Below, in pieces: positions 3,301 through 64,000 of a stretch of DNA of 64,000 nucleotides. Location of the stretch: the NCBI GenBank assembly GCA_000320545.1, contig ADNK01003345.1:18985-82984 (forward strand), in the 5' to 3' direction. The position numbers and the translations under genes are program-made. This stretch comes from Bigelowiella natans CCMP2755 (taxonomy: Eukaryota; Protista; Cercozoa). Position 1 is the first letter of the stretch. Each line of letters starts with the position of its first letter. The notes beneath the pieces are model-generated. The model searched no databases, was not told the origin of the DNA, and worked only from the letters and a program-made list of their open reading frames with translations.

Positions 3301-3351
<51 letters not shown>

Positions 3352-3524
3352 CACTGCATAAACATTTTTCCTCCTCTCCCTTCTCCCCCCCCCCCTCTTC
3401 TTAACCCCTCTTTCTACAACATCTTCTGCACCATGGAAGAACATCGCCGAAATCGTCTGATGGCAGGCATTGCACCCCCCAACTCACAGTCTTCTTCTTC
3501 AAGCAAGAAAGAGAAAGAAGGGGG

Positions 3525-3560
<36 letters not shown>

Positions 3561-4043: not shown

Positions 4044-4078
<35 letters not shown>

Positions 4079-6302: not shown

Positions 6303-6339
<37 letters not shown>

Positions 6340-6980
6340 GCCTGTTGCTGCTGCTGCTTCTCAAAAGAGAAGGAGATTGGTTGAGAAGATGCAGCACGAG
6401 GAATTGAAGAGGCAATCATCAAAAACTCAGCGTGTAAGTATGATTGTAGTAGTAGTAGTAGTAGTAGTAGTAGTACATGTCGTCCTCTGCCCGACGACCG
6501 ATCCGCTAAATAGTGTGAATGTACATTGTTATTACATGTACATAATAATGATGTTGTCTAATCTAAGTATCCTCATCGTCCCAAAATGAAGATGAATTAT
6601 GTTTGTTGACTTATTGAACGATGTGATAAAAAGTGTGTATTACTACTATTTATGTTTGTAAATCCACAGCAGCAGAAGCCACCACTCTCTCACCACAATC
6701 TATCGGAAGAAGAAGAAGAAGAGATAAAGAACAAAAATGAATTACGGGCTGATGTGGGAGTAATAGGTCACGGCAAGAAGACTGAGGAGGACAAAATTAG
6801 GATGATGGATGATTGCACAAAGAAGAATATGGGGGAGGAGAAGAAAGAGAAAAGCGGGAGATATACAACCTGCGTGGAGACGAAGATGAAGAACACCATC
6901 ATCTCTGGCTCTTCTCTCATTGCTGCTGCTGCTGCTGTTGTTGCTGCAAAATCTAGGAAGGGAATGGGGACATTGGTTTG

Positions 6981-7013
<33 letters not shown>

Positions 7014-8431
7014 CCCAATTGTAGCAGCAGTAGAGAAAGATGATGGAGAAGAACCAGAAGAAAAAGACGAGGAAGTACCTATGCAAACCTTATCATCATC
7101 ATCATCATCATCATCATCATTACTACGAGCTGGGGCAACTGCTATTACTCATAATACCGATGATAATGATGGATCTGGCAACAACAATAGTATGATTGAA
7201 AATAACAACAACAACAACAACAGCAACGACAACTTGCTGCTTCTCTCCCAAGAGTCCATGCAGACATGGATAGCAACGCCTTCGCCACCCAGCAGTGCTC
7301 ATAAGCACACTAGTGGACACTGTACTGACCAAGGAGGAGGAGGAGGAGGAGGAGGAGGAGGAGGAGTAGGAGACCAGAATGACAACAAGATGATGAAAAA
7401 CAATCACCAGGAGAATGGAGGGCCTAGAGCTGCCGCTGTCGTCTTTGGTGGTACTACTGTTGGCAACCAACTACAATTTACACTCACTACTGAACAATCG
7501 TCAACAGGCAGTAGCGATACTCCTCCTCCTCCTAATGCTGCAATTACAGTAAATGCCACAAGCATCGTAGATGATGATGATAGGGGCATAGGCGATGATG
7601 ATGATCATGATGATGATGATATAAATGATATATATACTACAGAGTATCAAAACTCTATGTTCCCTTCACCCTCTCTTCATCCATCGACGCTATCATCATC
7701 GTCGTCTTTTCCGTTGTCAAATCCTCGTGTGGTACCTAATCCAGAGGAATTTGAGTCACCAGATCATCATCATCATCATCATCATCATCATCGTAATGGT
7801 CATGATGATAATAACAATAATACTAATAGTAATAATAATGCTCAAGGGGAAGGAGAAGGAGCGACAAGAAGAAGAAGTGGTATGAGACGAATGGATGACA
7901 TTAATCACCATCATCATCATCATCAACTTGGTAAGAAAGATGATAAATATAAACAAGAGCCAGAAAAAGGAACATTTGAGGAAGAGGAGGAGGAGGAAGA
8001 GGACCACAAAGACCAGCAGCTCGATATTGAAGGAAGAGGAGAGACTGATAATGACGATGAAAATGAAGATGAGGAGGATGATAATACCTCTTCGTCTAAC
8101 AGCTCTCTCTCCTCCCTTTCTCTTTCGCTAACGCCACCTACCCCCCTCCCCCCCATGATGATGATGATGACGACGACGCGTAACAACAACAACAATACTA
8201 CTACCACTACCACTACTATTGCTACTACTACTACTGCTGCTGTTACCGATGGTCTATCCGGAGAGTCATCGTCGCATGGGGAGGAGGAGGAGTCCAAAAT
8301 AGGAGAAGACCGAGGAGGAGGAAGAGGAGGTGAAGGAGGAGAAAATCCTAATAAATTGGCAAAGATGGTGGTTGATGACAACCACATCATCAACCAATAC
8401 AGGGCACCACTATCATCATCATCATCAACAA

Positions 8432-8466
<35 letters not shown>

Positions 8467-8982
8467 CATCCATATCCTGGCAGCAGCAGTAGCAGCAGAA
8501 GAAACTATACTACTGCTAGAAAGCCGCCATTCTTTGTTTACAAATTTGCGCGTAAGCCACCTACATTCGCGGGAAAATTCGATGATCTGGATATAAATGA
8601 GAGGCAAAAGGGCAGCCAAATTTGTGGTGGAGTTATGTATCAAGAGCCTTTCTTCTCAGACCCAAAACATCGCAATTTTAAGCCATATATCATCACCTCA
8701 TTTGCAAGAGCTCGGTTCAGGATAGGAGGGTGAGAGAATCATCAAGACAACGACAAATTCATATAATAAATATGAAATCATCTTAATATACAAAACATGT
8801 TTACAACTAATGTACAACAACTATCATGAAGTACAAACGATTCGGTGTCAGTTAGCGAATAATAATAAAGACTACATTTAGAAAGAGACGGCTCATTTGT
8901 TGTAAATGAAGAGGAATGATCATTCGTATTTTATATCTGTTTATGTGACCATTGTCAACATATATATACCAGCAGAGCACGA

Positions 8983-9014
<32 letters not shown>

Positions 9015-9745
9015 ACAAATGGATGATGATGATTATGAGACATTGATAGTAGTAGTAGTAGAAGAGGTCTCATGTTTGGACGACGTTTATATAATTGACA
9101 CACACACACACACACACACACATTCTATCCATCCATCCATCCATCCATCACACGACTACTACTACTTACTACCGTAGCAATCCATCATCATTATGCGTCG
9201 AATCAATGTTACTTTGGGCTGCTGACACTACTAAATTAACAATTATGCCACTTTGTAAGTATTAATTCTTCTTCTTCTTCCTTTTGTTGTTGTTGATGCT
9301 GTTGTTATCATTTACCTACTAAATACTACTATTATTCCTACTATTACTACCTACTACTATCAGTGGTTTGAACGATGCTGAGTCGTTACATTACTATCCA
9401 TCACCATGGAAAATAAAGCATCGATCCCATTTTCGTCAACAGCAGCAGCAACAACAGCGCTACTATCATCATCATCAGCAGCAAGAGGAGGAAGAGGTCA
9501 TCAAGGAGAATAAGAGCTCTTGTGAAAACAACATTGTGGATCCTCCTTTTCTTCCACCACAAGTATTACAGCAACGTCCTCCTCCTCACCATCCTATCAC
9601 TCAAAAATTAGCCGTTTTTATCCCACCTACCCCCTTTGCCGTTTCATCATCACGCCTCAAGACACGATTCTTTGGTGGAAAGTTGGAAGCTAAAGGAGGA
9701 GGAGGGCGACAACTACTACAACCACCACCCTGCACCACCACCACC

Positions 9746-9776
<31 letters not shown>

Positions 9777-11522
9777 TAATTGCACCATCCTCCTCCTCCT
9801 CCTCCTCCTCCTCCTCCTCTCATCATCATCATCCACTCTTCTTATCGCCACGCATGCAGAAACGTGCCCTTAATACAGTTTTCACATATATTCCTCGAAG
9901 ACTTCCCCCATCCTCTTCTTCAGTGCGACTACTGCAATCATGGCAAGATGAGGAGGATGATGAAATGGAAAAAGAGAGACATTCTCGACGATACAAAAAG
10001 GAGGACGGGGAGGGGGGTGTAGTAGTAGGTATAACAACATCCACTCTTACTGCAACTCCTAAGAATAATCCTCACGTGGGTAGTAAGAGGAGGAGAACAA
10101 GCAGCAGCAGCAGCAGCAACAACAGCCGTCCCCTCTCACCGAAATATGATGAAAGATTCGAAGTCCAACGACCGCCTTCACCGAAGTCAGTCCTCACTTA
10201 TTATACAATCAGTTTTTCCTAGAAGAAAGAAGAAGATGTGAATGAGAAATAAATGATCATGATCAAGTGTAGTATTGGGGGGGAGGGAGGAGGAAGGAGG
10301 GCAGTAATTGAGCGATGACTACAAAGATCAGCTCCACAATTATTCGCTCTTTTATGTATAGATATTCAATGATTGTAAGACCGGTGTGTAAATTAATTAC
10401 TAACCAACTCTCTTTTTGGGTGTGTGAGTGTGTGTTTTCTGATGGTTCCTCGTAGATATGATGAGCGATCTTTTTTCACACCAAGAACGCAACTTCCACA
10501 GCGGCGGAGGAGGAGGAGGAGGAGGAGGAGGGTGTCATCATCATCAAAACTGTTAACATCTGCAACTAGATCATCACTATTACTATCATCATCTTCATCA
10601 TCACCTCCCTTGGTGTCAGTAGCGACGGCGGTATCGATGACTCCTCCTCCTCCTCCTCCTTCTTCTCTTCCTCCTCCTCCTCCAGTGCTACTAACAACAA
10701 CAACACCAACACCCACTACTACTACTACTACTAGTAGCCCCCATCAGCAGCAGCATGATTATAATCGTGCTGTTGATCATCCTGCAATGAGAGGAAAAGG
10801 AGGAGCTAATTGGAGATTATTACCATCACCATCACCATCACCATCATCATCATCATCCTTATCCCAAAAAGGACTTCAGTATCAGCGATTAGTGCCTCCG
10901 CCCTCTCTTTCTATCTCGTCATCAGCATCTTTAGTTGGTAATAGTAATAATGATGATGATATTGATGATGGTGGAAACAAGAAAAAAGCTACGATCTTTC
11001 GTCATAGTAAAGGGGAGAAAGAATCATCGGTATTGCATCAAGCACTGCCACCTCATCGAGAAAAAGGAGGAGGAGGAGGAGGAGAAGCGCCATCGTATTA
11101 TCTTTCAGGATCATCATCATTATTGTCTCAATCATCGTCATCATCATCATCACATGCTGCTGCTGCTGCTGGTATGATTATGACGCCATCCCCACAAAGT
11201 AGTTTGCATGGACATCTACTATCTCCTTCGTCCCGTCTCCTCTACACATCGAAGAAATCATCATCATCTGCAGCTGCTGCTGCACATTCTTCAGGGGTAT
11301 GCAACATTACGCAGCAAGGTACTCCATTCTCGGGGAAAGGGGGGTTGTCATCGGAGACCACTACTAAAAACGGGTTAGGCGGTGGTAACAAGAAGAATTC
11401 TGCCAACAAGTTTGGCGGTGGTTGTGGTGGGAATAATAAAAGCAATAGTCTTACGATGTTGGGGCTCGAAGTTGTACCGGATAGTACCAATAATAAAACG
11501 TGTTCTTTTAAGGCAACAGCAT

Positions 11523-11556
<34 letters not shown>

Positions 11557-12788
11557 AAGTAACGATAGTAGTAATAGCTGTGGTAGTTGTACGATGAATA
11601 CTACTCGAAAGCGGGATGAGGGGGAGGAAGGGAAGGAGGAGAACAACGCGACAAGTAAGAGCAGCAGCAGCAACAACAACAACATGAATGGGAGTAGTCA
11701 TAGTAGTAGTAGTAGTAGTAGTAGTAGTAGGTACGAAGACCGCATGCCTGATCCCTCCAAAGATCGGATTCTGATGGTGGTTTACCGCTTAAGACACGAA
11801 ATCAATGCCCCAGGAGGCCCTGCAGATGCCTCTAATGACCAAATGGGAGTTATTATAAATATCAGCAGTAGTACGACGAGAAGTATGATGAGGACTGCGA
11901 CGACAAAAGGAAAGGAGGAGGAAGAAGAGGACAAGAAGAAGATCAAATTGAGGAGGGCTCATGTGATTCGAGAACGTCGGCGTCTAGGTCTTCGATCTGA
12001 CGTGAAGCTTAGTTTGGTTGTTGGTGAGAATGCTGTCTTACATGAAGTTGTCAAAGTGGTGTGGCAACATGATCCAGATATACTTTTAGGCTACGAAGTT
12101 ACCTCGAAGTCCTGGGGTTATCTTCTAATGAGAGCAGAACTCCTTGGATATCCGCTGCTTCGAAATATATCTAGAAACCTCAACGATAAGAACATGGGCA
12201 ACCAAGCCAGCCTGTCAAGTAAAAGGAGCAGAGCAGCAGCATCATCGTCTTCTTCCTTCTTGTCAAGAAATAGTAATAGCGTCGCCAATAAGCAGCACAT
12301 TAGTAGTAGTAGCAGCAAGTATGGCAGCAACGACAACAACAACAACAACTTTTCCATCCCTACCACCACCACCCCAGCTGCTGCTGGTGGTAGTTCTTCT
12401 TCTGCTTCTTCTTCCATGCCCTCCTCTTCTTCATCCTCTGGTGGTGGTGGTAGTGGTGATGCTGCTGCCAACTCGTGGAGAATGAAACGTGATGCTGGAT
12501 TTAAAGTCGCAGGTCGTATCGTCTTAAATACGTGGCAAGTGCTACGACAGGAGCTCAAACTCAGACACTACGGCTTTGAGTCCGTATGCTTGCATGTGTT
12601 GGGCAGAAAGACACCATACATTAGCCCTGCGACACTAGCACGTTGGTTTTCTCACCATCATCATCATCATCACAAGTCCTCGTCATCGTTGTCATCGAGC
12701 TACCGTAGTAATCTTACGACAACAAAGGAGGAGGAGGAGGAGGAGGAAGAGAAGGGTGGGGATAATAATGGCCTCCTAACAAGATTCC

Positions 12789-12820
<32 letters not shown>

Positions 12821-13470
12821 GGTGGTGCTATGTCGCACTACTACTTACTGCGGTGGCGAGTGGTTAAGTACATGTTCGGAAGGTTAGACGGGTTATTTTC
12901 CATCCTTGACCGTATGGACCTTATCTCAAGAACATGCGAGCTTGCAAAGGTATAAACAACAACAACAACAACAAGAGGGAAAAAACAAGTTGTAAAAGAA
13001 AACGCGCAGTTTAAGAGCAGTAGCAGATATTTAGAATAAAATAAAATGATAATTTATATGGACAACGCCTCGGTTTCCCTCCAACCCCCCGATCCCCCCC
13101 CCTCTCTCTCACTCTCTTTATAGATAAAAGTAGTAGTATCTGCTGCTGTTTCTACTACTATTGGTGCTCGGTGCACTACTATATGATTAGTATGTATTCA
13201 GGTCTTTGGAATTCGATTCATCTCTGTTTTGCAGCGTGGTTCACAGTACCGTGTGGAGTCTCTCCTCTTGCGTATTGCCATGACACAGAATCTTCTTCTC
13301 CACTCATGTTAGGAGATAATAATAATAATATATAGAATAGTATGTATGCATGTATGTGTGTATTGTTTGTTGTACCCTGCATATGCTCATCAATTCCTGT
13401 GGTACGTAATTTGTATTTGCTGACCATCACCAGATAATCCTCAACAAATGTGTTCATTGTCGTCGTTATC

Positions 13471-13502
<32 letters not shown>

Positions 13503-13875
13503 ATAGTACGTGTTTCTTCCTCGTTCTGTTTCTTCCTTCTCCTTTGTTTGTGTTTGACAACATCCAACCAATACTACTCCTCCTACCACTACTCTACTGT
13601 TCATAATAATGTCGATAAAGGCACCATAACTGAGAGGCAAAAGCAGCCAGCAATGGAGTGTATTCCATTAGTTTGTGAACCTGAAAGCAAGCTGTACACT
13701 AATCCTGTGATCGTCGTAGACTTTCAGTCTCTCTATCCCTCACTCATCATTGCGTAAGTTGCAAGTTGTTGCTGCTCCTAAGTGCTTGCAATGCTGCATT
13801 TGACCGATGAGAAGAGAGACTTTTCTATATTTAAGCAACCTCCTTTACAACGTACCTGTGGTTATTGCCGTAACT

Positions 13876-13943
<68 letters not shown>

Positions 13944-13957
13944 TGTTTAAAATTGTT

Positions 13958-13997
<40 letters not shown>

Positions 13998-14654
13998 ATT
14001 GTGCTCTTCTCCCTTGTTCTGCCCTTCTTATCCCTCTGCTCCTCCTCCTCCTCCCGTCGTTCCCCAGTCAGCAAAACTCAAAAGAAAAACAGTTATTTCA
14101 TTGTTGTTGTTATTAATTGTGTTGTTATTGCTCTTCTAACAGGTACAATATGTGCTTCTCGACTTGTCTGGGCCGTCTTCCTGCTCCCCCCCCCCCCGGT
14201 ACTTCCCAGAGCGAGCTTATCAGCAAGTTTCTGAACAGTAGCCGCAAGTTTGGAGTGACTACAATGCCGATGCGACCATTTCTGATGTCACGACTGATAA
14301 ATGAGGACAGAATATGGGTATCACCCAATGGTATAGCGTTCGTAACAGCAGAGGAAAGAGCTGGTGTATTGCCAAGAATGTTGGATGAAATTCTAACAAC
14401 AAGAGTAATGGTCAAGGAGGATTTACAGAATGTAAAGAAGGGTAAAATGTCGGGAGGGAAGAGCTATGAAAACACGCTTAATGCCCGTCAACTAGCGTTG
14501 AAGCTAGTTGCTAACGTCACCTATGGCTATACCTCTGCTGGTTTTTCGGGTACGTAATATGTTTATTGACTACGTTTCTGTAGTAGAAGAAGTAGTAGTA
14601 GTAGTAGTAGCAGTAGTAGTAGTACGTAATATGTTTATTGACTACGTTTCTGTA

Positions 14655-14687
<33 letters not shown>

Positions 14688-17340
14688 CGTAGTATGTTTA
14701 TTGACTACGTTTCTGTAGTAGTAGTAGTAGTAGTAGTAGTAGTACGTAGTATGTTTATTGACTACGTTTCTGTAGTACTAGTAGTAGTAGAAGTAGCAGT
14801 AGTAGTAGTAGCAGCATAGTAGACAATCGTAAGAATGATGATGATGATGATGATGATGATTACTATATCTAGGGCGCATGCCATGTGCCGAAATCGCTGA
14901 TGCAATAGTTGAAACCGGTCGTCGTACCCTGGAAGATGCTCGCAGATTCGTGGAAAGTGAGGAGAAATGGGGTGGTGCACGTGTTGTTTATGGAGACACT
15001 GATAGCTTGTTCATCCATCTTCCTGGACGCACATGGCAACAAGCAATATCTGTGGGAAAACAAATTTGTCAGGCTGTAACAGCACGTAATCCCCCGCCAA
15101 TCAAATTGAAATTCGAGAAGGTGTATCATCCTTGCCTTTTGGTCTCTAAGAAGCGGTATGTTGGCCACATGTATGAGGACTTGCAGCAGAAGACACCCCA
15201 ATTTGATGCAAAAGGAATTGAGACTGTGCGGCGGGATAGCTGTCCTCTTGTTGCAAAGCTGATGGGATCAAGTCTACGCATTCTCTTTAATACACTTGAC
15301 CTTTCGCAAGTATAAATCACATTAATGATGATGATGATGATGATGATGATGGTGATAGTGATGATGATGCATACCTGCTTTTATGAGAACTTGATGCTGA
15401 TTCAAATATTTGCTGCTAGTGTAGAAAAAAAAATGATGATCTCCTCTTCTTCTTCTTTTACCATGAGCACTGCCACCAAGTCGGACATTTCTTCCTCTCC
15501 CTATTATTATTATTATTACACCTACTCTATCTAATTTATGAAAAAGGTGCGGAGTTATTTGTGCGCGCAATTCAGCAAAATTTGGGCCGGAAAGGTTCCC
15601 GTGAGCGATTTCGTGTTTTCCAAGGAAGTTAGACTGGGAACTTACAGGTCGTCGATGTATAAATACAATACACAATACAATAAACATATTCGCTCGTAGA
15701 TAGATACATAGATAATATAGATAATAACATGCGCTGTAAATTCGTGAGTTACCACTCTTCCTCCTCCTCATTCTCTCCCTTTATTTCTACGATGACTCAA
15801 ACCTAGTCTTCTTTCCTTCCTTCCTTCATTTCTTAGAGGTCCAACTCTCCCTCCTGCAGCATGTGTTGCTAGAAAAATGATAAAGAAAGATCCAAACTCG
15901 AAACCTTTATTTGCCCAACGTGTACGGTATGTGGTTGTTGAGGGCGGTCGTTCAGCAAAGATGGAGGAGTTGGTAGTATGTCCCTCCCAGATTGTGCACA
16001 AAGGGGGGTCGCACCGACGACGAGTCAATGCACACTACTACATTACGCGGCAAGCAATACCTGCACTAGCACGGGTACTCAATCTGTGTGGAGGAATGGT
16101 ACGATCATGGTTTGAGACGATGCCAAAACCAAGGCGTTCCACACAGGTAGTAGTAGTAGTAGTAGTACATGAGGAGGAGGAAGAGGAGGAAGAGGATAGC
16201 ATCTAACTTAAAATAGAAGGAAACACTACTATAGATTACTACTACATGCTTTGCTCGTTTTTCTCTCTTTCTTTATCCACTGGAATCTTGACGACTCTTT
16301 TACTTACTACCACCAAAGTAAAGCCATTATCTCCGCTTTAACATCACTCTATCATATAATAATCACATCTCCTTCTTTCACCAACTATGTGGCCTGCTTA
16401 TGTTCGTCTCTTGCTGTTTTAGCTTATGGACAATGTGGGGTCTTCAGGCACTCTTCGCAGGTCTTGATAATGATATGATATCTATGTATAAATTGTGTGC
16501 AGTTTATACAAAACACACGAACTTTAAACTGACACAACACATCCACATTCGTATGGCCCACATCCAAATCCACATCCAAATCTACACACATACGCAGAGA
16601 GTGACACGCTCGATAAACACACCTTGTGTATTATTATATATATACATGCGTTTGATATTGCGTTCGTATATGAAAAATGATTGATGTTGATCAGTTACTA
16701 TTCCTCTACACATTGTATCGTCTGCGACAAGCAGGTCCTGCCAATGATTCTCTCGATGCTTAGTCTAGTTCGAATGCGACCAACACTCAGTTTCTCCATT
16801 GAATCACCTTTTCGTGCGAAAAATGAAATCAAGTTTCCCTCACATTTGGATAATAATGCTACCGTTGGGAACTTTATAAAACAGATAACAGGTTCAAGTA
16901 TGCACAGCAATTCACGCACCAGAATAAGCCAGAGCTTGTGTAAGACATGTCGCACTCGACCTGGTTTAGCTCAAATTGCTCTAATACGGCAACAACAGAG
17001 ACTAGAGAGACGGGCAGGAAAACTCGATTCCATTTGTATTAGCTGCTGTGAACTCAAAGCTGGCGGTCAATGTGCGGCGATTGCTCCGGTAGCGTATAAT
17101 GCGCGGGGTCAGGATCAGCATCAGCACCATCGTCAGCATGCTTCATGTGGCGTAGCAGCAGCAGGTTCAAGCACATGCACTGGATACGGAGTGGAGGATC
17201 CAATTCCTTGCGAATCACTCGCATGCCCCATCTTTTACGAGCGTCATGCCATCCGTTCTAGGCTTAGAAGTTTCGAAAAGAGCTGCGGGGCCACTGGTAT
17301 CGATACCTCGCCGTCGCCGGTAAGTGAATGGAATACCTAG
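29..17340 (+). CDS. REV3: DNA polymerase zeta catalytic subunit (family B), multi-exon; 5' end lies upstream of the window
   Basis: GT-AG exons spell REV3 motifs in order: 29-82 (RVPVIK), 344-393 (VFGTTPAGQKACVHVHG), ~1547-1628 (KFLRIEFVDPNSVQRAAVLFQ), 1805-1866 plus 2183 onward (QAHIPYILSFLADHNLVGM), YQEPFFSDP (~8640), DPDILLGYEV..SWGYL (~12070), 13202 onward (VFGIRFISVLQRGSQYRVES), 13621-13753 (DFQSLYPS), 14143-14549 (KLVANVTYGYTSAGFSG), 14873-15309 (YGDTDSLF, SKKRYVG, KGIETVRRD), 15547-15647, 15837-16146, 16423-16460 and 16695-17340 with the C-terminal Cys motifs (CIVC/CKTC, CISC/CESLAC). Internal exon boundaries between 3.4 and 10.5 kb are approximate. Confidence 0.96.
14550..14815 (+). 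repeat. Four tandem copies of a ~60-70 bp unit (gtacgtaatatgtttattgactacgtttctgtagtag + (GTA)n) in a REV3 intron; each unit starts with the 5' splice site
   Basis: Copies start at 14550, 14622, 14685 and 14742; the first coincides with the donor after AGFSG. Confidence 0.9.
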
Positions 17341-21549: not shown

Positions 21550-21669
21550 GATGCAAAGGTCTGGTGTTTCGAATGCACCGGAACGCTTTCCCGGGGCGCG
21601 AATTTAATTGTGAAAAAAAAATGTTCGGAATCACTTGGCATCTGTTCAAAAACCATTTGGTTTTAGCTC

Positions 21670-23250
21670 TGCGACAAATGCTGCGAGTCACAGATGGCCT
21701 TGAACAAAATCCGACCATCACATTGCACAAACACCAGAAACGCATCCCTTTTTGTTGTTGCGTCTCATTCATCAACACAATGAGGTCAAGTTCATCATTC
21801 ATTGTTTGTTCTTCAAGATGATCCAATCGCAGATCGTCGTGTGGACATGGCCTTCAGGAAGTTTTTGCTCAGAGTGGAGGTCTTGCGCCGTCAGAATTTT
21901 GCCGCCAGTGTCATTGCCTCTCAATGACCAAGTCATGCCATTTTGGCAAACCAGCTAGTTGATTTGCTAGTCACAGTCCTCACTGAAACCAGTTCGAGGC
22001 ACTGCACTTTGCACACTGCAAGTGTCTTGCAACACTTTGGAAGTGTAGTTCTTCATCATTGTTTCATTGTTTCATTGTTTCAAGTCCAACATCATTTTTG
22101 AACTTGAGGGAAAGTTGAAGCAGTGAAGCAGTCCAGCAAGCAGCCCAGCGCAGTCAAGCAGTCAGGTTGTGCTCATCACAGCACCAGAGCAGCCAACGTG
22201 TCACTTTTTGGTCCTCGTTGACATTTCAGCTCGAAGCACTGCGTTTCGCACTTTGCAAGTCACGCAACACTTTGGAAGTGTGGTCGATCACTAAGTTTCT
22301 TTCCTTGTTTGTTCGTTTCTCCCTTTCGAGCGATCCGAGACGAACCTTGACCTCGATCTCAACCACTCGTTCGTTCATCGTTCGTTCGTTCACACGCGCT
22401 TTTGCAATTTCGACTTTTTTGACGTGCAGCGGTCTTCAGCATTGCACTCATTGCTTTGCACGATGCCAGCTGGTTGCCATGCCAAAGTCAAAAAAGTTGT
22501 TTTTTTCAAAAAAATCATCAAGGTGAACTCAGAACTGGCTCCACCCGTGTCTTTGCTCTGGTGCTGCGCGCTGAAGCACGAAGAAAATCGAAACTTTTGT
22601 TCCTGAGAGTTGGCCATCAAAACTTCAATGGCCGGAAAACAAGTCATTTGGTTTGAGTTTTGCAAACAAAAAAGTTTCCAAGCGGCGCAGCCGATGTCGG
22701 CTAGTTGCGAGTGACCAAGCGCCAGAGCGTTCAAGCCAGCAAGTGGTCCTCGCGTTTGCCACCACCACGTGAAACGCTGGCATGAGGCGGAGCTTCCTCA
22801 CGCACGCTCCAGCGCTGGCAGCGCAGCACATGAGCACGTTGTCTGTTGGCTGTTCAGCTGTGCACCGCCGTGTCTCGAGTGCCAATCAGCGTGACATTTC
22901 ACTTGCTCGTTCACTCCACTTGCGCTCAATTGTGACAATGCGTGCGTGAAGCATTGATCATTGCAAGTTCTTTCACCACACTCGATCTGGCATTGCACGC
23001 AGGTTTTCCACACGTGCGTGCATGATCCTGGGCGGATCGATCGATCGATCAATTGTGATCCCATGGAGTGGGTTTCAATGACACGCACGCATTGGACATG
23101 CTGCAGAGACTTCGTGCGCCATCATTGAATTGATCGACGAATGAACACACGGAGCAACGATGTCACACATCACGCCATGCTACGTGCACCAGTGCACAAC
23201 TGCTGCTGTTCCAGCAACGCACAAACCAACACACCTGCAGAATGCTTCGT
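21670..23250. other. TpA-depleted intergenic block 1
   Basis: Manual count finds 6 TA in ~1.6 kb (21956, 21968, 22046, 22292, 22702, 23181), all in CTA or TAG context; CA, TG and CG are abundant. Confidence 0.92.
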
Positions 23251-31639: not shown

Positions 31640-32880
31640 GCAGGTGTTGAGTTGCAGGTAGATTTGGTGCATTGCAGGGTGGGTTTTAGTTGTCGCACCA
31701 GCTGTTTGTGATGGTGCAGCTGGCAATTTTGCTCCTTCAAAATTTTGTGAAACGAGGTCGACTTCGGTCGGCACTGCTTTCATTCATTCATTCGTCATCA
31801 GCGCTGCGTGCTGTCTGTGCATCGTGTCGAAAAACAAATTGTGATCAACGTTTCAATGTTTCAATGTTCTGCTCGTTGTTCTTCTTCGTCTAGTGCAACA
31901 AAATGTCACCGGGTTTGACCGTGTTGTGAAAATTGTGACGCCAACTGCACGACCGTCTGCGTCTCACTCTGGCACTCGTGACGTTTCACCATGGTCAAAT
32001 GCTGACACGCACGCATCCGTTTGAAGTGGATGGGACAGAACAACTTCAATTTCTCACAGCTCTTCTTGCAGCGAACTTTGGACCAGTGGAACTCATGCTA
32101 GAGGCAAGCATGCACTAGTTCTGGAGTTCAGTGAAGGGCTTTCATGCGGGCTAGCGCTAGACCTAGCTAACAGTGTGCGTGCGTGCCTAGGTGCCAGCGT
32201 GCCAGCGACCGCCCTGTTCATCACGCCCATCGTCACAGCTAGACAGTGTCGATCTTGTTGTGCTCAAACAACGCAAATGACAGCGCGGTTGTGCATTGTG
32301 GCGTGCAGATGGACTTGAAACATCCTTCACAACTAGACAAACTAGACGAACGCCATGGTGCTTGGTGGAAAGTGTCCATCACATTCGGCGGCACTCCATG
32401 CATTTCACACATCCAAACAGAAAGCCAATGCACAGTTCAGCGCGCACGTTTGTGCACGAGGGGGAGAACAATGAAAAATGGGGTTGCAGAGGGCTCATGT
32501 CATGCGTCGATCAATTTCTTGATGAGTTTGCTATTATCATCATTGTCAATGAGAGGACACGCATGCATTTTTGCAATCATGACGATGATGTCTCATTCCA
32601 CCTTTGACCCTTTGAGTTTGCGCGTGGTGAATTCTTGGCATCTGCCACTCATCGGATGAGTCGCTCGTCTAGAAAGGCAACAGCATCATCAGTGTGTAAC
32701 AAAAACAAGCCTACAAATTGTTGTCATCACTGCACACACGATAAGCTTCATCAAATTGTGTAGATGCCTTTCACTACAAACAACATCCAATCATTGCAGA
32801 GAACAAAAAGAAATGCATTTGATTCTGACCTTCCCCCAAGTATGAGCACGAAAAACTTTTTGATGGCTCTGAAATGATGC
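31640..32880. other. TpA-depleted intergenic block 2
   Basis: Manual count for 31700-32690 finds 14 TA, of which 11 are CTAG. Confidence 0.9.
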
Positions 32881-54759: not shown

Positions 54760-55785
54760 CCTAGGAGATGCATGGACGCGGGATGAGACGTTCAGAATGG
54801 GACTTCGAAAGTAGAGAGTTGTCACATAGTAGTAGTACTAGTAGTATGAATGGTGCTATTGTATGCTCCTGTTTTTTATTTGTTTTTTCCTTCTTTTTGT
54901 GCGTTTATCTATTCATTGTAAAGAACACTAGGCTTGAACATTGTAGAAGTACAGAATCATATTCTTCTTTTTGCTGTTTGTGTGTGTGAGTCGTATGTGT
55001 GTACGATGACGACTAGTGATGATGATGATGAGGATGATAATGATTATGATATGGTTCCCCTATGTTCAGATTGCACTGGATCGCCATACAATTTCCTTGC
55101 CGCGTTCGAATAACAAGTATTACTTACAACATTACTAATATCAATTATCATCAACATCACCATCTTCATCATCATTCATTGTAGTGATTTATTGAAGGAG
55201 ATCTAATCTGTTTACTAAATAAACAATATTGTGTCCCATAATACCTCCTAGTCTGACAGGGTGTTCTTATCGGTCGTAAACGACTAATTATTAGAAATAA
55301 TGAAACATATTCTACAATTATTGCTACTACTGCTTCTTTCTACCGAATTATCTTTTGTCTGTTGTCGTCCATTTTGTAATTGTGCTATACTGTATTAATC
55401 ACTTCTTTTCTTCTTCTTCTCCTTACTATTATTATTATCATTATTATTATTATCATCGACAGACTACTCGATACGTACAAGACCAGATGAGCAAGCAGGG
55501 TATGACCAACAGCGTGAAAATAAAGATGATTGAAATGATGATGATGATGATGATGCTGTGTATTATTATACGATATATTGAGGAGGTGATGCTTTACAGT
55601 ATCTTCTACCATTTCATCACTACAACGAATTTCAAAAACGTCATCATCATCATCCTCATCTACATCATCATGATCATCTACATCATCATCATCCTTATCA
55701 TTGCTATCATATACAATCTTCATTTTCTCTTTGTTTCGATTGCAGAGCTACTGGTCCTCGATCATGGTTTCTGCAAGGTTCACAG

Positions 55786-55820
<35 letters not shown>

Positions 55821-55966
55821 ATGAAAGTAGGAGGAGGAGGAGGAGGAGGAGGAGGAGGAGGAGGGCATCGAATGGTGGTAGTGGTACTAGTAGAAAGTTA
55901 CTGCAGATGGTCCTACTAATCTCCTTCACTGGCTCCTTATATGTCATCATCATTATCTTACTACTG

Positions 55967-55997
<31 letters not shown>

Positions 55998-56669
55998 ATA
56001 ATAATAATAATAATACAAAGGAGGAGGAGGTGATGATGATGATGATAGCCCAACAACCAAGAGTTGGGGTCATCATCGTAATCATTATCATACACCTCCT
56101 TGGACTCTACTTCATTCAGAAAAAGATGCCAAAAAGTGGAGGTAGATTTCTTTTTCATATGAGAATGATAATAATATTATAACAGTATTTTTCCTACTTG
56201 GCACCACTATCATCATCATCAGCAGCATCATCATCACCATCGCTGCTCTCACCATCATAATCGTCATTACATCATCATCGTTATCAGTATAATATTTTCT
56301 CTTACATATGTATTCAGATATCCTGGAAAGGTTCGTGATGAAGTACCTGGAGAAATTAGGTAGTAGTAGTAGTGGTAGTAAATAAGTAGCAGTAGTATTT
56401 GTACCGTATTCTACATTTTATTTGTACAATAAATATACACTAAAATTTCCTTCTATCCTATTTTCTTTCTCTTCTCCTCACTTCGTTCATCAGAGACTTT
56501 GATATATCAAAAAGTAGCGGCCAGTACAATATTTATCGGTAGTGATGATTTGTTTATGTAGAAAGTTATTCCTTCATCTATGATCAAGATAATATTAATC
56601 AATCACATCATCCTCGGCTTAATCCATCGACTTAGCTCTCCTGATCAACGGATACGAGTATACCTATTT

Positions 56670-56701
<32 letters not shown>

Positions 56702-57285
56702 TTTTACTATTTATATTTACGATGTTTAGATGGGTCTTTGTCAGAGGATTTACAAAGGAGAAATTTCGACTTTCCATTTCGCAATTAAGGTTTTGTTTCT
56801 AGCATGAGGCTAAGAAGAAGAAGAATTAGATGTTGGGGAGGGGGAGGAGAAGGTGGTGTTAGGCGACTGCTGAGTCTACTAATGCATTCGTGAGGAGGAT
56901 GCTGTGTTGTCGTCGTTGTCGTTGTACACTTGGCTTTCAGTTTGAACGATTTCCTTTCCTCCTCATTCTTATGAGTATCCATCAGTAAATATGTGATGTT
57001 GAGAACAACAAACAGCTATCCATTTGTGCTTATAAATGCTCATATGCTTTTAATTGTCATAATTCTATGTTACCACAATTGATTATTCTAGGTTGCAAGG
57101 ATTCACATACAATCAGGAATGCTGCATTATAGAGTGTTTAGATATTTATTTGGGTAATTGTATTAATTATAACATGTTGTAATTTTGGAAACCAATGAGC
57201 TTTGTTGTACTTGTTCTGAGAATGTTTCACCACTGCTACTATGCTGATGGTAACGACCTGCATATATAGGCGCAGTATCAATATG

Positions 57286-57325
<40 letters not shown>

Positions 57326-58107
57326 GAATATGGCTATTAGCTATCCTACTGCTGTTAAGATTGCTAAATCCACCGTCATTGCGATGATGAAAGAATAACG
57401 ATGTCGACTGATCTAATAATAACATTACAGGAGAGGAAGCGAAACATCGTCATCATGCTGAAGAAGAAGCATCTTCCTCAGAAGTAATAGCACATAATAC
57501 TCCTTACTGCTGCGAGGATGATGATTCTGGTACTACTACTACTACTACTACTACTCAAGTGAGGATTGGAAGAATACAAAATTAAGAACATACGCTGATG
57601 ATCATTACAATGTGATAATGATTGCTATTCTTTCCTCACATGTCGTTGGTATAATTCTCAAAGAATATCTGCGTAAGCAGCTGAAATGTGAACAGCGTTA
57701 ATATTAATGTCTTTTCCGATGGTTTTGATCATGAATTTATGTCGCGAACAGCAGATGAGAACAGCATAGAAGGAGATCACACAAGTTTGATAACAGGCTC
57801 TACTACGACAACACGGATGACTACACCGATAATTGGAGGTGCTGTTAATGACATTGTGAGAAGAGATCACGATGATAGTTTGGATAGTGAGATCATTGGT
57901 AAGACTACTTCTGAGGTCAGAACAGAAGATGAAACTTCGAATGATGTGAACGAACCACAGCACTACGACAACCACTTGGCTTCTTCGCTGAGAGAGTTGA
58001 GCACTACGACATGCCACAACATTGATGATTTGAAAAGGCCAGTAGGAGAGGTTCCATCTCAATCTGAATTTGATTCTTTGTCTCACCTTGTGTTGACATA
58101 CATTTGA
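54760..58107 (+). CDS. Exons encoding a second discoidin/F5-8 type C-like domain and a probable terminal exon; either a continuation of the exonuclease gene or a separate gene
   Basis: In-phase GT-AG exons 55070-55116, 55463-55499 and 55746 onward give LHWIAIQFPCRVRITNYSIRTRPDEQAGATGPRSWFLQG. Further exons give WTLLHSEKDAKKWRYPG..VPGEIRDFDIS..FRLSISQL, paralleling the first domain. ORF 57688-58107 may be the last exon. Confidence 0.6.
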
Positions 58108-58119
58108 TCTACAACTTGA

Positions 58120-59063
58120 CGAGACAGGAAAATGTCTTGGCAATTCTGTGGCACACCATTGTTCTCTGAGCGTTTTTGCTTGAGTTGCATGCCCAGCATG
58201 TGTGACATTGCAAATCAAACACAAGCTAACAAGGCATTGCCACTTGTGCGTTGTGTTCACGACAAATCGGATGTGACTTCTGCGCAAAATCAAAATTGCG
58301 AAGAGCACATTGCTTGCGAATGAATCCATCGCCGAGCAAAAAACCTGGTGCGCACTTGTGACTGCTCCCATCAAGCACGATGCAAAGACAAAAAAGGAGC
58401 GCAGGGTTGGGGTTGAAGTTGCAAATGCACGATGTTGACAAAGATGATGATGTTGGTGACAATGATGATCACGATGACGATCATGATGTGGAAAATCGTG
58501 AAATCCAGCCAGAGTTGTCCAACAAGTGACAGTGATGTCACTTCTTGTGCACTCCACAACAGCTTCTTCTTCTGCAATGCCTTCTTCTTCTTTTCAACAT
58601 CAAAGGGGTGATGACACTGCAGACTGATCCTTCTTGGTGGAGAATTCAAGTTCAAGGAAACACGGACGACGATGATGATGTCTCTGGCAGTGCTTCACAA
58701 GAAAACGAGCGAACGACGGAAGAAGAAGGTGCAGGAGGAAAACATCACCAGCAAGCTTCAGCGTCACCACCACCCTCATCATCACCATCGTCAGGAAACC
58801 TCCCTCCCAGAAAAGGCGGTGCGTCGTGGCCAGCAACAGCGACGATTCGTGCACAACGTGTGAATCAAGTCTCAACGACATTCGTCTTGATTGCTGACAT
58901 CGCCACATTGCCATCATCCTCATCATTGCCACCACCATTGCTGCTGCTGTGTTGCCACTGCTGCCACTTGCCAACAAGGCGACCGACTCGCTGCACCTGA
59001 AGTGAGGTCTCCATTGGAGGTGAAACCACTGCCACTGCTTCCACTGCGACTTCAGTTTGCATG

Positions 59064-59115
<52 letters not shown>

Positions 59116-62100
59116 GGTTCGTCGTGTCGCTCATCCTTTTTCATCGTGCATGGAAAAAGTTGGCATCACTTGATTCCTCAAGGTTCTCCGGGGCTCTGGG
59201 GCTGTGAACACAACCAGGATCATCAACGAAATGCCCAGCGCATCGAGAGAGATTCTTGAGCTTGGAGAGTGGAGCACGCGCATCCCAACACCTTGAAGAA
59301 GAGACACTGCTGCTGCCACTTCTGCTGCTGCCACTGCCACCACTGCCACTTTGCAGACACACGATGAAGAACAAAAGACACGATCTTCTTGCGGATCAAG
59401 AGCAAGTTGTCAGTTCATTGCGACAATCATGACAGCGCAACGCTGCGATCATCACCACAACGTGGACACAACGTGTGGCAGCAAGTTCGCAGCAGCATCA
59501 AGTCACACACGTGTGGGTGAAAGCACGATGCATGCGATGATGGATGTGATGAACGATCAAAACCATGAAATTGCAACAAGTCGACAGCAGACAAAGCACA
59601 CAACAACGCACATCACGACGTTGTGCAATCACGCGCAAGCAGTCTTTCACGTGTGTCAATTGGTGCAATCTTGCACTTCATTGCACCCGCATTGTGCAGA
59701 TGTGGCAACGTCTGAGACGTGTGTGTGTGCGCGCATGCCAGCATGCCATCGTGTGTGGATTCGCATGTTGCATGTCCATCACTTGATGAAAGCAGGGTTA
59801 CACGTTGCTCGCGCGCACGCTGGAATGCGCGCAGGGCACATTGTCAGCCAGACTGGCAGAACGTGCACGTGCACAATGACACTGCCAAGTGCATCACGGG
59901 AGCGCGGCCACAGCACAAGTGGAGATCAGCGTCATTCTTCATTCAATGACAAGCTTCGCAAGTTTGCGCACGTGACAATGGCACTCATCGCACAGTGCCA
60001 ATGTGAGTGTGCAACAACGTGGCTGCTGCCATTGCCACGAGTGGTCATCCAGCGACGAACCGTCACGTTTCGCACAATCGCATCACCACGTTGTTTTCGT
60101 GCAATCCAAGCAACTGTCAACGATTCAACAACAGGCAAAACAGGTGATGACTCAACAATCAACACACGTCCTGTGCTTGCCGACCTCCGGAAAAATTGCA
60201 CAAAAACAATTCGTCATGCCAGCACACGTGCACGTGCACACCTCCGCTGCATTGCACAGCCAACAACACATTGGGATGACCATTGAAAAAGTTTGAACAC
60301 TTCGTTGCATCCGTCTCACACACAAGAGACAAACAGGTGCAACTTGAGCGCTGCAGCCGCTGCGTTGCACAGCCACATTGGGATGACCATTGAAAAAATT
60401 TGAACTCTTCATTGCATCCGTCTCACACATCAGCCAATGGCCAGAAGAGAAGACTGACTGGGGCTCCTCCTCGTGGCAGCAATGCAGACAAAAAACGTCC
60501 TGCGTGTGACACTGAAAGCACAACCTTCGTGTGACCAAAGACAAAGCACCCTTCTGGCCTTCTTGGCGGGGGAGGGGGTGGATTTGAGCCCTTGGATTTT
60601 CGCAAAAAGGGCGATGGCGACGGGGACTCATCCGCTGTTTGAGACAAAAGATTGCGATCAGAGTGAGAGTTGTTGCAAGTGCCAATCTTGCACAAATCGA
60701 CAGGACAACATGTCAATGAGAAAGCAAACCCATGGTAGCCGTGCAGATGAAGACGTTGAGAACTGCAAGTGCGTTGTGGCAGATCTGATGATGCACTTCC
60801 TTCCACCTTCTCCTCCAGACCACTGTTTGTCCACGGTGGCCATTGCAAGCATCCCACCTTCCACAAACAGATCAGTTGTGTTGCAATTGTTGTCAACATT
60901 CATGAAGAGGATTTCTAGATGTGTCCGGCATGCATTTGGTGCTGACATTCCACAAACAGATCGGTTGTGTTGTGATTGTTGTCATCATTCATCGGCTTTT
61001 CGATCGAACCACCCTCGCAGGATCCTTCAAGTTGAGGGATTGGGGTTGTCGCAGAACAAAAACATCCTGTGATTCTTCTTGTGCGCGTTGGTGCACTCAA
61101 AACTCATCACTCACACTCATTCTTGTTGCACACACAAGTGCTTTGCTTCCTTTGCTTGCGTGCTGCTCAAGATGAAAAGATCGAAGCACACAAAGGAGGA
61201 ATGCACAGGGAGAACAAAGAGATCAAGATTGCACGAAGCCGCACAGGTCATTGGTGAGAGGTGTTCGTGGTGGGGTCTGGACTGGTGAAGCACAGGCCCT
61301 CATCGGCTTCCATCATGAGCAGATGGCGAGAAAATGAAAACATGCGACTGTTCCTTCGTTTCTGTTCTCATGCCAATGAGCATCAATCATTTGGAGAGCC
61401 ACTTTGAGATGGATGAAATCCGCATTTCACCTCTGGATCACAGGAAATGGATGAGCACACAAGAGAGGCAGCTACGCAAGACAAGGACGATGTGCAATGA
61501 AGAGATGACACATCGTGTTCTGAAAAGCCATGGTGTTGCTGTGGTTGATGTGATGATGCTGCTGACAAAATGTGCCAGAATTGCAAGGATGCTGCTGTCA
61601 TGACACCATTTCATTGATGTGATCCATTTTCATTTCTGGATTGGAATGACCGCAAAGCAGCAGTTGATGGTGGCGAAGGATCCATGGTGCAAGATGTTCC
61701 GCAAGATTTTTGAGGCTGATCAGGGAAGTGAAGTGCATTTCATGCATTGTTGCGGGTTGGTGGCGAATGACAAAATGAAGGGAAGGTTGCAGTGCATTCG
61801 ACTTTTTTCTCCCCTTGAAAATGGTGTTGATGGGAGGTGGATGATGCGGAGCAAGGTTGCAAAACTGAATCAAACAACACACCTGGCTCGATTCCGGTCA
61901 ACTGATTGAAACACAATTCACATGTGACATCAATGCATTGAAATGTTTTTGAATGATCAGGAAACGACCGGAAAAGTGAGCAGTGCAATTTTGTTCATGG
62001 AGAAAGCCACACTGCCACTGCGTTCCATGAGAATTCTCTCCATTCCTGTCTTTCTTTGAACCACCATCGCCTCATCTCAACATTTTCAAACAAATCGTGA

Positions 62101-63870
62101 TTGATGGCAGGGCCACGACGAAGGAAAGGACCTTGAAGATTGGTCAAAGGATGAAGTGAAAGCGTGGTTAGGATTCTTGCAAAACAAGGGGGAGTTCGAA
62201 TTCAAAATCGAGAAAGTTGCTTGCCCGGGAGAATTTTTTGCTGCGATGACCAAAGCAGACCTGTTGAGACGTGCACCGAGCTGCGGGGACCACATCTCCA
62301 ATGCGAAAGAGGCGCTTCTCAGCAAGCAAAAAGGTGGTGTGCATGCTAGCTCAACAGACGTCTCACGCGTGTTCTCTGTTGCATGCTTTGTCATCGATCG
62401 ATGTGGAACAATGCCCACAGATGTTGCACGCAAACATCCAAGAGAATTCATTTTCATGGATGCGCACATGAGTGAGTGTGCATGTCAGCTCAACAATCGT
62501 CTCACGCCATTTGTGCAACACATGCAACATGATCATCATCTCTCAATTTCGTTTTCTCAATTTTGGTGTTGCATTGCAAGAGTTTCAATGGACTGTGACC
62601 TTGAGCACATTGTGTTGCAAGATTTCACAAATGATGGCCTTCATTTTGTTTTGCAATTGTCAGCACCTTCTTCTCCCGAAAGACAACCTGGTGAACATCA
62701 ATCCCCTTGAAATTCTCCCTTGCGTCCAGTTCATGTGTGCGTTCACTGTCAATGGTGCCACACAACACTCACACATGCACATGTGGCAAATTCAAATTTG
62801 ATTTTGTTTCAGCAAAACGCCCTTTCGAAATTCACAGACCGACAGAAACGAAAGTCGAATTGGGAGAGCTCACACTGGAGGGGGGAAACAATCAGGAGAT
62901 TGGATGTGCAGAAGAAATGAAGGAGGGAGATTTTTTCCATGTCGACGGAATGATTCACGCAGGTTTGAAGGAAAAGCAGTTGAGCAAAGAAGCCGATGAC
63001 AGAGTGTTGCTGCATCTACGCGCTGAGGGTTGTCAACACTTGAGGAGGCTCGAAGAAGTGGAAGGTGGAAATGCACTTCTTGTGGATGGACCCAAAGGAT
63101 CTGGAAAATCTGTGACATCTTGGACTTGGGCAAGGCCAAAAGCAAAACAGGGGAAATCTGTGTTGTGGATGCACGTGGATGATTTTGCGACTTCTCATGT
63201 TGCGATTTTGAAGCTTTTCAAGGATGACATTCGACGTGTCTGTTTCGGAGATGAACCAATTGAGTTTCAGCAACTCGTCAAAAGCGATCACGTGCTTGAT
63301 GCTCCCGAGGACATCATCATCTTGGACGGATTCCACAGGAAAGACCATGAGGAAATTTTGACACAGTTGTGGGACACCATTGATGATCTCGCACCAACTC
63401 GGATCAGCATCGTTGTTTCGTCAATGACGGCTACCTTTTCTGCACAAGAATTGAAGATGGCCCGTGCCAAGAAACATCGCATGGCATCTTGGACATTCAA
63501 GGAGTGCAAGGAGGTTGTTGAAAACAGGGCATTTCATCGACAAGTGGAATCAAAATTGGGAGGTCATGGTGACAAGAACGCCAAGTTGTTGCACAAATTT
63601 TGCTGCTCAGGCATTTCTGCCCGTTTTGCTTTTCATTTTGCGGTTGAAGAAGTGAAGGAAGAGATCAAAAGGGGTGCGATGAGCGTTGGAAATTTGTCAG
63701 ACACAGCAGAAGGAAGTGTGACTTCAGCAAATGAAAATGCAGTGAATGCACTGTGCGGAGGAGTGCGATCACCAAGTGGGGAAGCACGAGATGTCTTCGT
63801 GAGTCAATGTGCTCATGGACCAATTTTTTCCGATCAGGGTCAGGATCTAGGTTGAAACCACAACCGCGTT
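58120..63870. other. TpA-depleted subtelomeric block 3
   Basis: Manual count finds 10 TA in ~5.75 kb where several hundred would be expected from base composition. None of the ORF-track proteins I read wholly within this block contains Tyr. Confidence 0.95.
62110..63855 (+). pseudogene. Crinkler/RHS-like spliced gene: SAM/Pointed-like header plus P-loop NTPase, hypermutated and truncated at the telomere
   Basis: Exon ~62110-62333 encodes LEDWSKDEVKAWLG..MTKADLLRRAPSCGD (SAM/PNT-like). A micro-exon lies at ~62664-62690. Exon 62813-63855 has Walker A ALLVDGPKGSGKS, Walker B IIILDG, and SWTFKEC, KFCCSGISARFAF and VSQCA, which become CRN-like SWTFKEY, KFYYSGISARF and VSQYA when C is read back to Y. 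The family call is pattern recognition, not a database hit. Confidence 0.7.
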
Positions 63871-63874
63871 CAGG

Positions 63875-63946
63875 TCAGGGTTGGGGTCAGGGTTGGGGTC
63901 AGGGTTGGGGTCAGGGTTGGGGTCAGGGTTGGGGTCAGGGTTGGGG
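63875..63946 (+). repeat. Proximal telomere-variant array (TCAGGG TTGGGG) x6
   Basis: Six exact 12-bp dimers read directly from the sequence. Confidence 0.97.
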
Positions 63947-64000
63947 TTAGGGTTAGGGTTAGGGTTAGGGTTAGGGTTAGGGTTAGGGTTAGGGTTAGGT
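63947..64000 (+). repeat. Telomere (TTAGGG)n; chromosome end
   Basis: Eight perfect TTAGGG units plus a terminal TTAGGT, G-rich strand pointing to the window end. Confidence 0.97.

Follow-up and report, generated by a model that had tools for sequence, protein, structure and literature searches.

A TpA-depleted chromosome end in Bigelowiella natans as the probable end product of TpA to TpG/CpA hypermutation

What process could remove nearly every TA dinucleotide from the end of a chromosome and leave the DNA beside it with an ordinary composition? The question is raised by a tract of 5.8 kb in Bigelowiella natans CCMP2755. It lies at the right end of a 64,000-nucleotide stretch (GenBank assembly GCA_000320545.1, contig ADNK01003345.1, positions 18,985 to 82,984 of the forward strand), which we call the window and in whose positions all coordinates are given. 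By its sequence, the window is B. natans nuclear DNA that ends in a TTAGGG telomere. A transporter gene at 39.4-41.8 kb has 99.5-99.8% DNA identity to a Joint Genome Institute (JGI) transcript, with the introns spliced out, and the open reading frame (ORF) at 62812-63852 has 100% protein identity to JGI gene model Bigna1|146458, a P-loop NTPase. We consider it very probable that the tract is the saturated end product of a DNA-level TpA to TpG/CpA process; its targeting would follow domain state, and adenine deamination is the leading candidate for its chemistry.

The phenomenon has already been described for B. natans and the gene has already been listed; the discovery belongs to a 2026 preprint by Mettrop et al., which reports TpA to TpG/CpA hypermutation of integrated viral DNA (bioRxiv 10.64898/2026.01.13.699255). 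By mutation accumulation and Illumina sequencing, the authors found two integrated viral regions with a mutation rate about 1000 times that of the remaining genome. Of 231 mutations in these regions, 230 were A>G or T>C, almost all of them at TpA, and only some lines carried them. The preprint also reports 124 TpA-depleted, CpA+TpG-enriched clusters genome-wide, includes Bigna1|146458 in its tables of TpA-depleted coding sequences, and puts forward an ADAT2 homologue as the candidate enzyme; it makes no mention of telomeres, subtelomeres, flanks beyond TpA, heterochromatin or strand tests. A first-pass annotation of the window, made from the letters alone and with no means of searching the literature, knew of no characterised system with this signature; our literature search found no description of the signature besides this one. 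New from the present locus are a subtelomeric copy of a host gene that was hit while its sister copies were spared, the symmetry between strands, the lack of double hits, and a slower loss of CTAG.

Composition and edges of the tract

The first-pass annotation had counted by hand about 10 TA in 5.75 kb, and the exact count is the same: positions 58120-63870 hold 10 TA against 382 expected from base composition, an observed/expected ratio (o/e) of 0.03. CA and TG are raised over the same interval (o/e 1.68 and 1.67), while AA, TT, AT and CG are ordinary (1.14, 1.24, 0.98 and 0.71), so that all six dinucleotides are plentiful, as the annotation had said. In the rest of the window, TA has an o/e of 0.84 and CA/TG of about 1.24. 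The features that concern us here are as follows.

58111..63946, no strand assigned: TpA-erased tract, 10 TA in 5836 bp, rho(TA) 0.026, rho(CA+TG) 1.67
55300..58110, no strand assigned: unaffected left flank, TA-rich and of low complexity, in which (TAC)n/(GTA)n/(ATT)n microsatellites are numerous
58953-58967, 59305-59319 and 59323-59349, + strand: mixed TGC/CAC trinucleotide arrays, confined to the tract within the window

The onset of the tract comes directly after a TA at 58110. At this left edge TA density falls from normal to zero over about 250-500 bp, and the longest TA-free gap measures 1572 bp. The preprint defines its clusters by thresholds on 1-kb windows (rho TA <= 0.43 and rho CA+TG >= 1.52), with a 3-kb rule for calling a cluster. 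Five consecutive 1-kb windows of the tract (58001 to 62001) pass both thresholds, with rho TA of 0.01-0.07 and rho CA+TG of 1.57-1.79. The flank had been described in the first-pass annotation as TA-rich genes: TA-rich it is, but at 55.3-58.1 kb it is laden with microsatellites and not demonstrably genic.

The GC content is 48.6% in the tract (58111-63946) and 40.3% elsewhere in the window, a difference of about 8 points. At the TA density of the flank, about 440 conversions of TA to CA/TG would have taken place, and these account quantitatively for the excess. Only 10 TA are left in the tract, so almost nothing remains to be mutated. The stop triplets are skewed in the same way (TAA 1, TAG 5, TGA 159), and the long ORFs of the tract are open because TAA and TAG have been lost and because the process cannot make in-frame stops. 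No Pfam match was found among the ORFs of the left flank or among those at 58.1-61.1 kb, a segment with no recognisable coding content, and domain searches of the ORFs at 58-61 kb found no viral or transposable element (TE) domains.

The microsatellites give a first view of the change. Pure (TAC)n/(GTA)n arrays of at least 4 units number 38 outside the tract and 0 inside. From their sequence, we read the mixed TGC/CAC arrays of the tract as fossil (TAC)n microsatellites, in which each TA has independently become TG or CA.

TA is the ancestral state

The direction of change can be read in a gene copy that occupies the telomere-proximal part of the tract.

61110..63829, + strand: telomere-truncated, tyrosine-free copy of a multi-copy, uncharacterised P-loop NTPase gene (Bigna1|146458), recognised from paralogue transcripts
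61110-61247, 61439-61491, 61645-61897, 62116-62333, 62662-62690 and 62812-63829, + strand: exons of this copy, mapped from transcripts L002, L003 and L004

The family has sub-threshold domain matches only, to AAA_16 and STAND-like domains, and a search of 1.8 billion cluster representatives found 593 homologues at E-values up to 0.001; a metagenome scan for relatives gave no confirmed locus. Between the exon blocks, in what should be introns with approximate limits, there is 1 TA in 1011 bp in total. The internal repeats of the tract form three short pairs, in which one site is CA in one member and TG in the other, implying an ancestral TA, one is TA versus TG, and the remaining differences are mostly of CpG type. 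These sites were too few to polarise the change, so we used the paralogue transcripts.

As reference we took transcript L002, which has a normal TA o/e of 0.59 and aligns to the window without gaps. Its 73 TA correspond in the window to 36 TG, 34 CA, 3 TA and 0 CG, and the converted sites make up 70 of the 93 mismatches between the two sequences, leaving 23 of other kinds. The first-pass annotation had proposed that A:T is converted to G:C at TpA on both strands, and had looked to an alignment of paralogues for the polarity; both this alignment and the mutation-accumulation data of the preprint agree with its proposal. Within the 1018-bp last exon, 59 TA are common to three transcripts, and the window has 29 TG, 28 CA and 2 TA in their place. 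The non-TA positions of this exon carry 3 window-specific changes in 900. TA conversion has thus outpaced background substitution by a factor of at least a few hundred, and because the tract is saturated, this several-hundred-fold excess is a lower bound.

The encoded protein records the same direction. Eight intact paralogue proteins have 14-23 tyrosines (19-23 except for one short fragment), and the window copy has 0. At 12 positions where the paralogue has tyrosine and the window histidine or cysteine, distant homologues of other organisms mostly have tyrosine or phenylalanine. There are 36 window-specific residue changes, nearly all of the types expected from TA to CA/TG (Y>H/C, I>M/T, V>A, L>P/S, and A>G at the first position of a codon that follows one ending in T); the sole exception is N>S, a non-TA A>G. 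The paralogue alignment, the tyrosine or phenylalanine of the outgroups and the predicted types of change together make TA the ancestral state.

Strand symmetry and sequence context

Among the 70 converted sites none is CG, the product of a double hit, so both bases of TpA are strictly required and a site is inert once its TA is gone. Choice of strand is random from site to site. Along the NTPase gene, TG and CA alternate in 35 runs against 36 expected (runs test), which rules out strand-coordinated (kataegis-like) clustering. Nor does the sense strand of the gene (+) impose a bias, with 36 TG and 34 CA, and the whole tract has 628 CA and 587 TG (p=0.25). Replication forks in this telomere-adjacent tract presumably run toward the chromosome end; together with the symmetry, this argues against a mutator that prefers single strands exposed by transcription or replication, and it suggests that the substrate is duplex DNA, or that both strands are equally accessible.

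Two smaller parts of the window carry a similar signature.

21605..23181, no strand assigned: interstitial island with the same signature, 6 TA left, 6/6 in CTA/TAG context, 3 of them CTAG
31687..32670, no strand assigned: another interstitial island, less completely erased, in which 13 TA remain and 10 of these are CTAG

Both islands have sharp edges, have no Pfam content, and are shorter than the 3-kb rule of the preprint requires. In the island at 31687-32670, the 10 CTAG lie within about 450 bp, at about four times the background density; CTAG is therefore locally enriched there as well as spared.

Across the three TA-poor tracts, the surviving TA are concentrated in one context. Of 29 survivors, 27 stand in CTA/TAG, against 37.5% in the background, and 16 in CTAG, against 2.9%. 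In the subtelomeric tract about 3 of 13 expected CTAG survive, compared with 7 of about 450 other TA, which suggests a loss rate about 3-fold lower at CTAG. Conversion is somewhat slower at CTA/TAG and slowest at CTAG. The mutations that the preprint lists for scaffold 10 can be tallied by neighboring base (bioRxiv 10.64898/2026.01.13.699255): TAA 32, TAC 22, TAG 3 and TAT 34 on the 3' side, and ATA 33, CTA 17, GTA 30 and TTA 35 on the 5' side.

An additive rule in which a C at position -2 blocks editing was also tried and gained no support, as one-sided CTA/TAG sites fell in the predicted direction 13 times and in the other 8 times. This one-sided rule being unsupported, the CTAG effect is a relative one.

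Four changes in Table S2 of the preprint are not at TpA: scaffold_10 positions 402688, 416158, 431449 and 450385 are T>C in ATG or ATT triplets, and position 450385 lies 2 nt from a canonical TpA change in the same line. These four, which the preprint text does not discuss, are possibly the result of low-level off-target or locally processive action.

The telomere junction and the origin of the tract

At its right end the tract runs into the telomere.

63830..63874, + strand: junction, where paralogue homology ends and degenerate telomere-like hexamers follow, with one TA survivor at 63848, in CTAG
63875..63946, + strand: (TCAGGG TTGGGG) x6, a telomere-proximal variant array made up of only the two TA-conversion products of TTAGGG
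63947..64000, + strand: telomere repeats of the canonical TTAGGG type with their TA intact; 8 units are complete, and TTAGGT closes the window

Beyond 63829, where homology stops, the intact paralogues run on for about 210 residues. The arrangement of the sequence indicates that the 3' end of the gene was lost to a terminal chromosome break, which was healed by telomere addition. The JGI model for the erased copy (window 62707-63855, +) reads past the truncation into the degenerate telomere-like repeats, up to a TGA at 63853-63855, so its C terminus is not derived from the gene.

The strict alternation of the variant array over 12 units would not come from independent random hits and points to amplification of a mutated 12-bp unit. 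The array alone is weak evidence for the process, since an exact 30-mer, (TCAGGGTTGGGG)x2.5, is present in more than 120 unrelated marine metagenome contigs, which have 60-72% GC and normal TA and are not B. natans. The terminal TTAGGG would be intact because telomerase renews these repeats.

The tract may have been hypermutated elsewhere or earlier and brought to this end as a block by subtelomeric exchange, with the edge at 58.11 kb as a recombination junction. We regard this alternative as unlikely, though the least unlikely of those we considered. The edge is abrupt, as a junction would be, and subtelomeres commonly exchange blocks. There is also exon 1 of an expressed and otherwise TA-normal paralogue (L004:1-138, which maps to 61110-61247), which shares 97.8% identity with the erased copy of the window and holds just 1 TA in its 138 nt. 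Part of the erasure may therefore predate the split of the paralogues, or the 5' ends of the intact copies may also border on erased domains. Against a moved block stand the telomere-proximal repeats, which were added after the truncation and have been converted as well, so the process acted here after the break, and the two small interstitial islands of the window, whose edges are similarly sharp.

The chemistry of the change

The sequence shows an A:T to G:C transition at TpA only, found equally in exons and introns, in intergenic DNA, in (TAC)n microsatellites and in internalised telomere repeats. It went site by site on a randomly chosen strand and stopped at each site once TA was lost. 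In the chemistry that we propose, the adenine of 5'-TpA, on either strand, would be deaminated to hypoxanthine, which would be read as G at the next replication. The actor would be a TadA/ADAT-like or other nucleic-acid deaminase, recruited to silent telomere-proximal domains. Adenine deamination at 5'-TpA is the most likely chemistry and the most economical one, because TadA/ADAT enzymes act on an A that follows a U; our confidence in it is slightly less than even.

The thymine of the same dinucleotide could be the target instead. In silent or telomeric chromatin, a TET/JBP-type dioxygenase would oxidise the T of TpA, giving 5-hydroxymethyluracil (5hmU), 5-formyluracil (5fU) or a J-like base; this would mispair with G, and T to C would become fixed on either strand. 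The products and the strand symmetry would be identical to those of the adenine-directed model, and the process does reach up to and into telomere-like repeats. Base J occurs on the T of TpA, on both strands, at kinetoplastid telomeres, and the 5hmU of dinoflagellates favors TpA. Yet no such base or enzyme for chlorarachniophytes was found in the searchable literature, and 5hmU is only weakly mutagenic. The terminal TTAGGG is also unmutated, though renewal by telomerase explains this under either model. On balance we think the thymine route rather unlikely.

Sister copies and the choice of target

We propose that targeting would follow the state of the domain, most likely silent telomere-proximal chromatin, and would depend neither on repeat status nor on foreign origin. 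The name given to the phenomenon in the first-pass annotation, reverse RIP (repeat-induced point mutation), holds for the direction of change and fails for the targeting, as near-identical expressed paralogues are untouched. At least two genomic Bigna1 paralogues and several transcripts are TA-normal and differ from the window copy by less than 1% at non-TA positions; the intact paralogues differ among themselves by 0-0.4%. Duplication was therefore not sufficient, and the sparing of these copies argues against both foreignness and homology as the trigger.

Targeting of RIP type, in which the tract would have been mutated as a duplicated sequence recognised by homology, has in its favor that the NTPase gene belongs to a multi-copy family. 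We judge it improbable: RIP mutates all copies, and here at least two Bigna1 paralogues and several transcripts keep 19-23 tyrosines and normal TA. In addition, the main target of the preprint is single-copy (bioRxiv 10.64898/2026.01.13.699255).

Foreign origin does not describe this target either, which consists of an intron-bearing host NTPase paralogue of an expressed family, microsatellite-bearing non-coding DNA and telomere-like repeats. In the preprint, foreign origin is the authors' interpretation and not the definition of the tracts.

An artefact, either a modified base at TpA that was miscalled or an error of assembly, was considered only because a CA/TG split of about 50:50 could mimic strand-specific miscalls. 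We found no support for it, and its probability is close to nil. Polymerase-based sequencing reads N6-methyladenine (6mA) as A and 5hmU as T, and the 2012 JGI gene model encodes the identical tyrosine-free protein. Moreover, the Illumina reads of the mutation-accumulation lines yielded de novo TpA to TpG/CpA changes (bioRxiv 10.64898/2026.01.13.699255). ADAR-type RNA hyperediting followed by retro-copying, for which the preference of ADAR for a 5' U speaks (discussed in bioRxiv 10.64898/2026.01.13.699255), and selection or compositional avoidance of TA are just as improbable. The erasure runs in place and without a break through introns, upstream non-coding DNA, microsatellites and telomere-like repeats, both strands are equally hit with near-absolute TA specificity, and the loss of tyrosine at conserved positions speaks against selection.

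Weighing the proposed explanation

More specifically, we tentatively propose a mutator that is aimed at silent, telomere-proximal or heterochromatic domains with sharp edges, acts on duplex TpA and slowly on CTAG, and works through a dedicated enzyme, not ADAT2/3; taken as a whole, this proposal is likelier to fail than to hold.

Several points weigh against our explanation. The deaminase, the lesion and the chromatin mark are all hypothetical here. TpA is palindromic, so chemistries directed at A and at T give the same products and the same correlations with flanking bases; the three routes offered in the first-pass annotation (a TadA/ADAT-type deaminase, TET/JBP oxidation of thymine and the processing of a methylated adenine) all lead to these products. 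ADAT2 is a housekeeping tRNA enzyme in essentially all eukaryotes, and its presence therefore does not discriminate. The sharp left edge could be a recombination junction instead of a chromatin boundary. As for silence, six transcript-derived proteins match the intact cluster and 0 match the erased copy; this absence is weak evidence that the erased copy is silent, and the TA-poor exon 1 of an expressed paralogue indicates that transcription alone does not protect. The argument from replication direction presupposes that no origin lies on the distal side of the tract. The survivors behind the CTAG effect number 29, and the scaffold-10 list, where a G follows the edited A in 20 of 206 TpA changes, agrees with it in direction as raw counts that are not normalised to background.

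If a chromatin-aimed mutator does exist, chromosome ends would be its natural target, hit constitutively, and could serve as a convenient read-out in the search for the machinery. A natural, domain-restricted A:T to G:C mutator of nuclear DNA would be rare and would oppose the usual GC to AT bias. Such a process recodes genes without stop codons, turning tyrosine into histidine or cysteine. Behind it there may be a natural enzyme that edits adenine or modifies thymine in DNA, which would be of basic and biotechnological interest, and the CTAG penalty offers a concrete test of specificity for candidate enzymes.

Other features of the window and telomere-like arrays elsewhere

A series of very long ORFs, apparently without introns, lies at 3271-17340 (+) of the window. 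Trinucleotide arrays of the types (GTA)n/(TAC)n/(CAT)n/(TGA)n are scattered through it, and TA is not depleted. A family-B DNA polymerase exonuclease domain is found at 10424-12955, and a C4 zinc finger of the polymerase delta/zeta type at 16681-17340. From these matches, 3271-17340 is probably a single, giant polymerase gene of the host (REV3-like) that has taken in low-complexity inserts. The idea that the long intronless ORFs of 3-13 kb are an unmutated viral insert was rejected, as they had no match in PHROGs and the region holds the polymerase exonuclease domain and the C4 zinc finger.

In the marine contigs (L006-L125), the telomere-like arrays are interstitial and usually follow ...CCTGG (for example, L016:1370-1480, L012:1-130, L041, L009/L029 and both ends of L081). 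Several are flanked by direct duplications of 14-18 bp of host sequence (14 bp in L009/L029, 18 bp in L041). The C-rich strand in L016 is the sense strand of a gene resembling a Na+/H+ exchanger. Its reading becomes continuous (...GLRGGVAFALA...) when one duplicate is deleted together with the array, from a GT to the conserved ...AACCAG end. Judged from these sequences, the marine arrays look like intron-generating insertions of telomere-like repeats in a GC-rich picoeukaryote. Our literature search found no description of telomere-like intron-generating insertions.

Comparison with known systems

Base J and the JBP enzymes of kinetoplastids resemble the present case in where J is placed, namely at the T of TpA in both strands of the TTAGGG repeats and within silent subtelomeric domains. 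J differs in being an epigenetic mark that is not known to erase TpA from a genome, and neither base J nor JBP was found for chlorarachniophytes in our literature search.

TadA and ADAT2-ADAT3, together with the TadA-derived adenine base editors, deaminate an A that follows U or T (U33-A34 in the tRNA) and so convert A to G, which fits 5'-TpA. Their natural substrate is the tRNA anticodon loop, and ADAT2 is also present in eukaryotes that lack the TpA signature. To our knowledge, no natural genome-scale, domain-restricted activity of TadA/ADAT on DNA has been established.

The AID/APOBEC enzymes share the use, or proposed use, of base deamination as a defense, a short sequence context and clustered tracts. 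They convert C to U on single-stranded DNA, in strand-coordinated clusters and with a transcription or replication bias, whereas here the change is A:T to G:C and the strand is random at adjacent sites.

Fungal RIP is likewise a dinucleotide-specific transition hypermutation that acts in discrete tracts and degrades gene copies. It changes C to T at CpA and makes TpA and stop codons; the change here runs in the opposite direction and creates no new in-frame stops. Moreover, RIP needs duplication, hits all copies and is premeiotic, acting through the cytosine methyltransferase homologues RID/DIM-2, and in the present case near-identical paralogues are spared.

The closest likeness is to the system of Mettrop et al., with which the tract shares the species, the dinucleotide, the two products, the signature of depletion and enrichment, and passage of the thresholds. 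That system was framed as a defense against foreign DNA (nucleocytoplasmic large DNA viruses [NCLDV], virophages and TEs), whereas the DNA hit here is a copy of a multi-copy host gene at a chromosome end.

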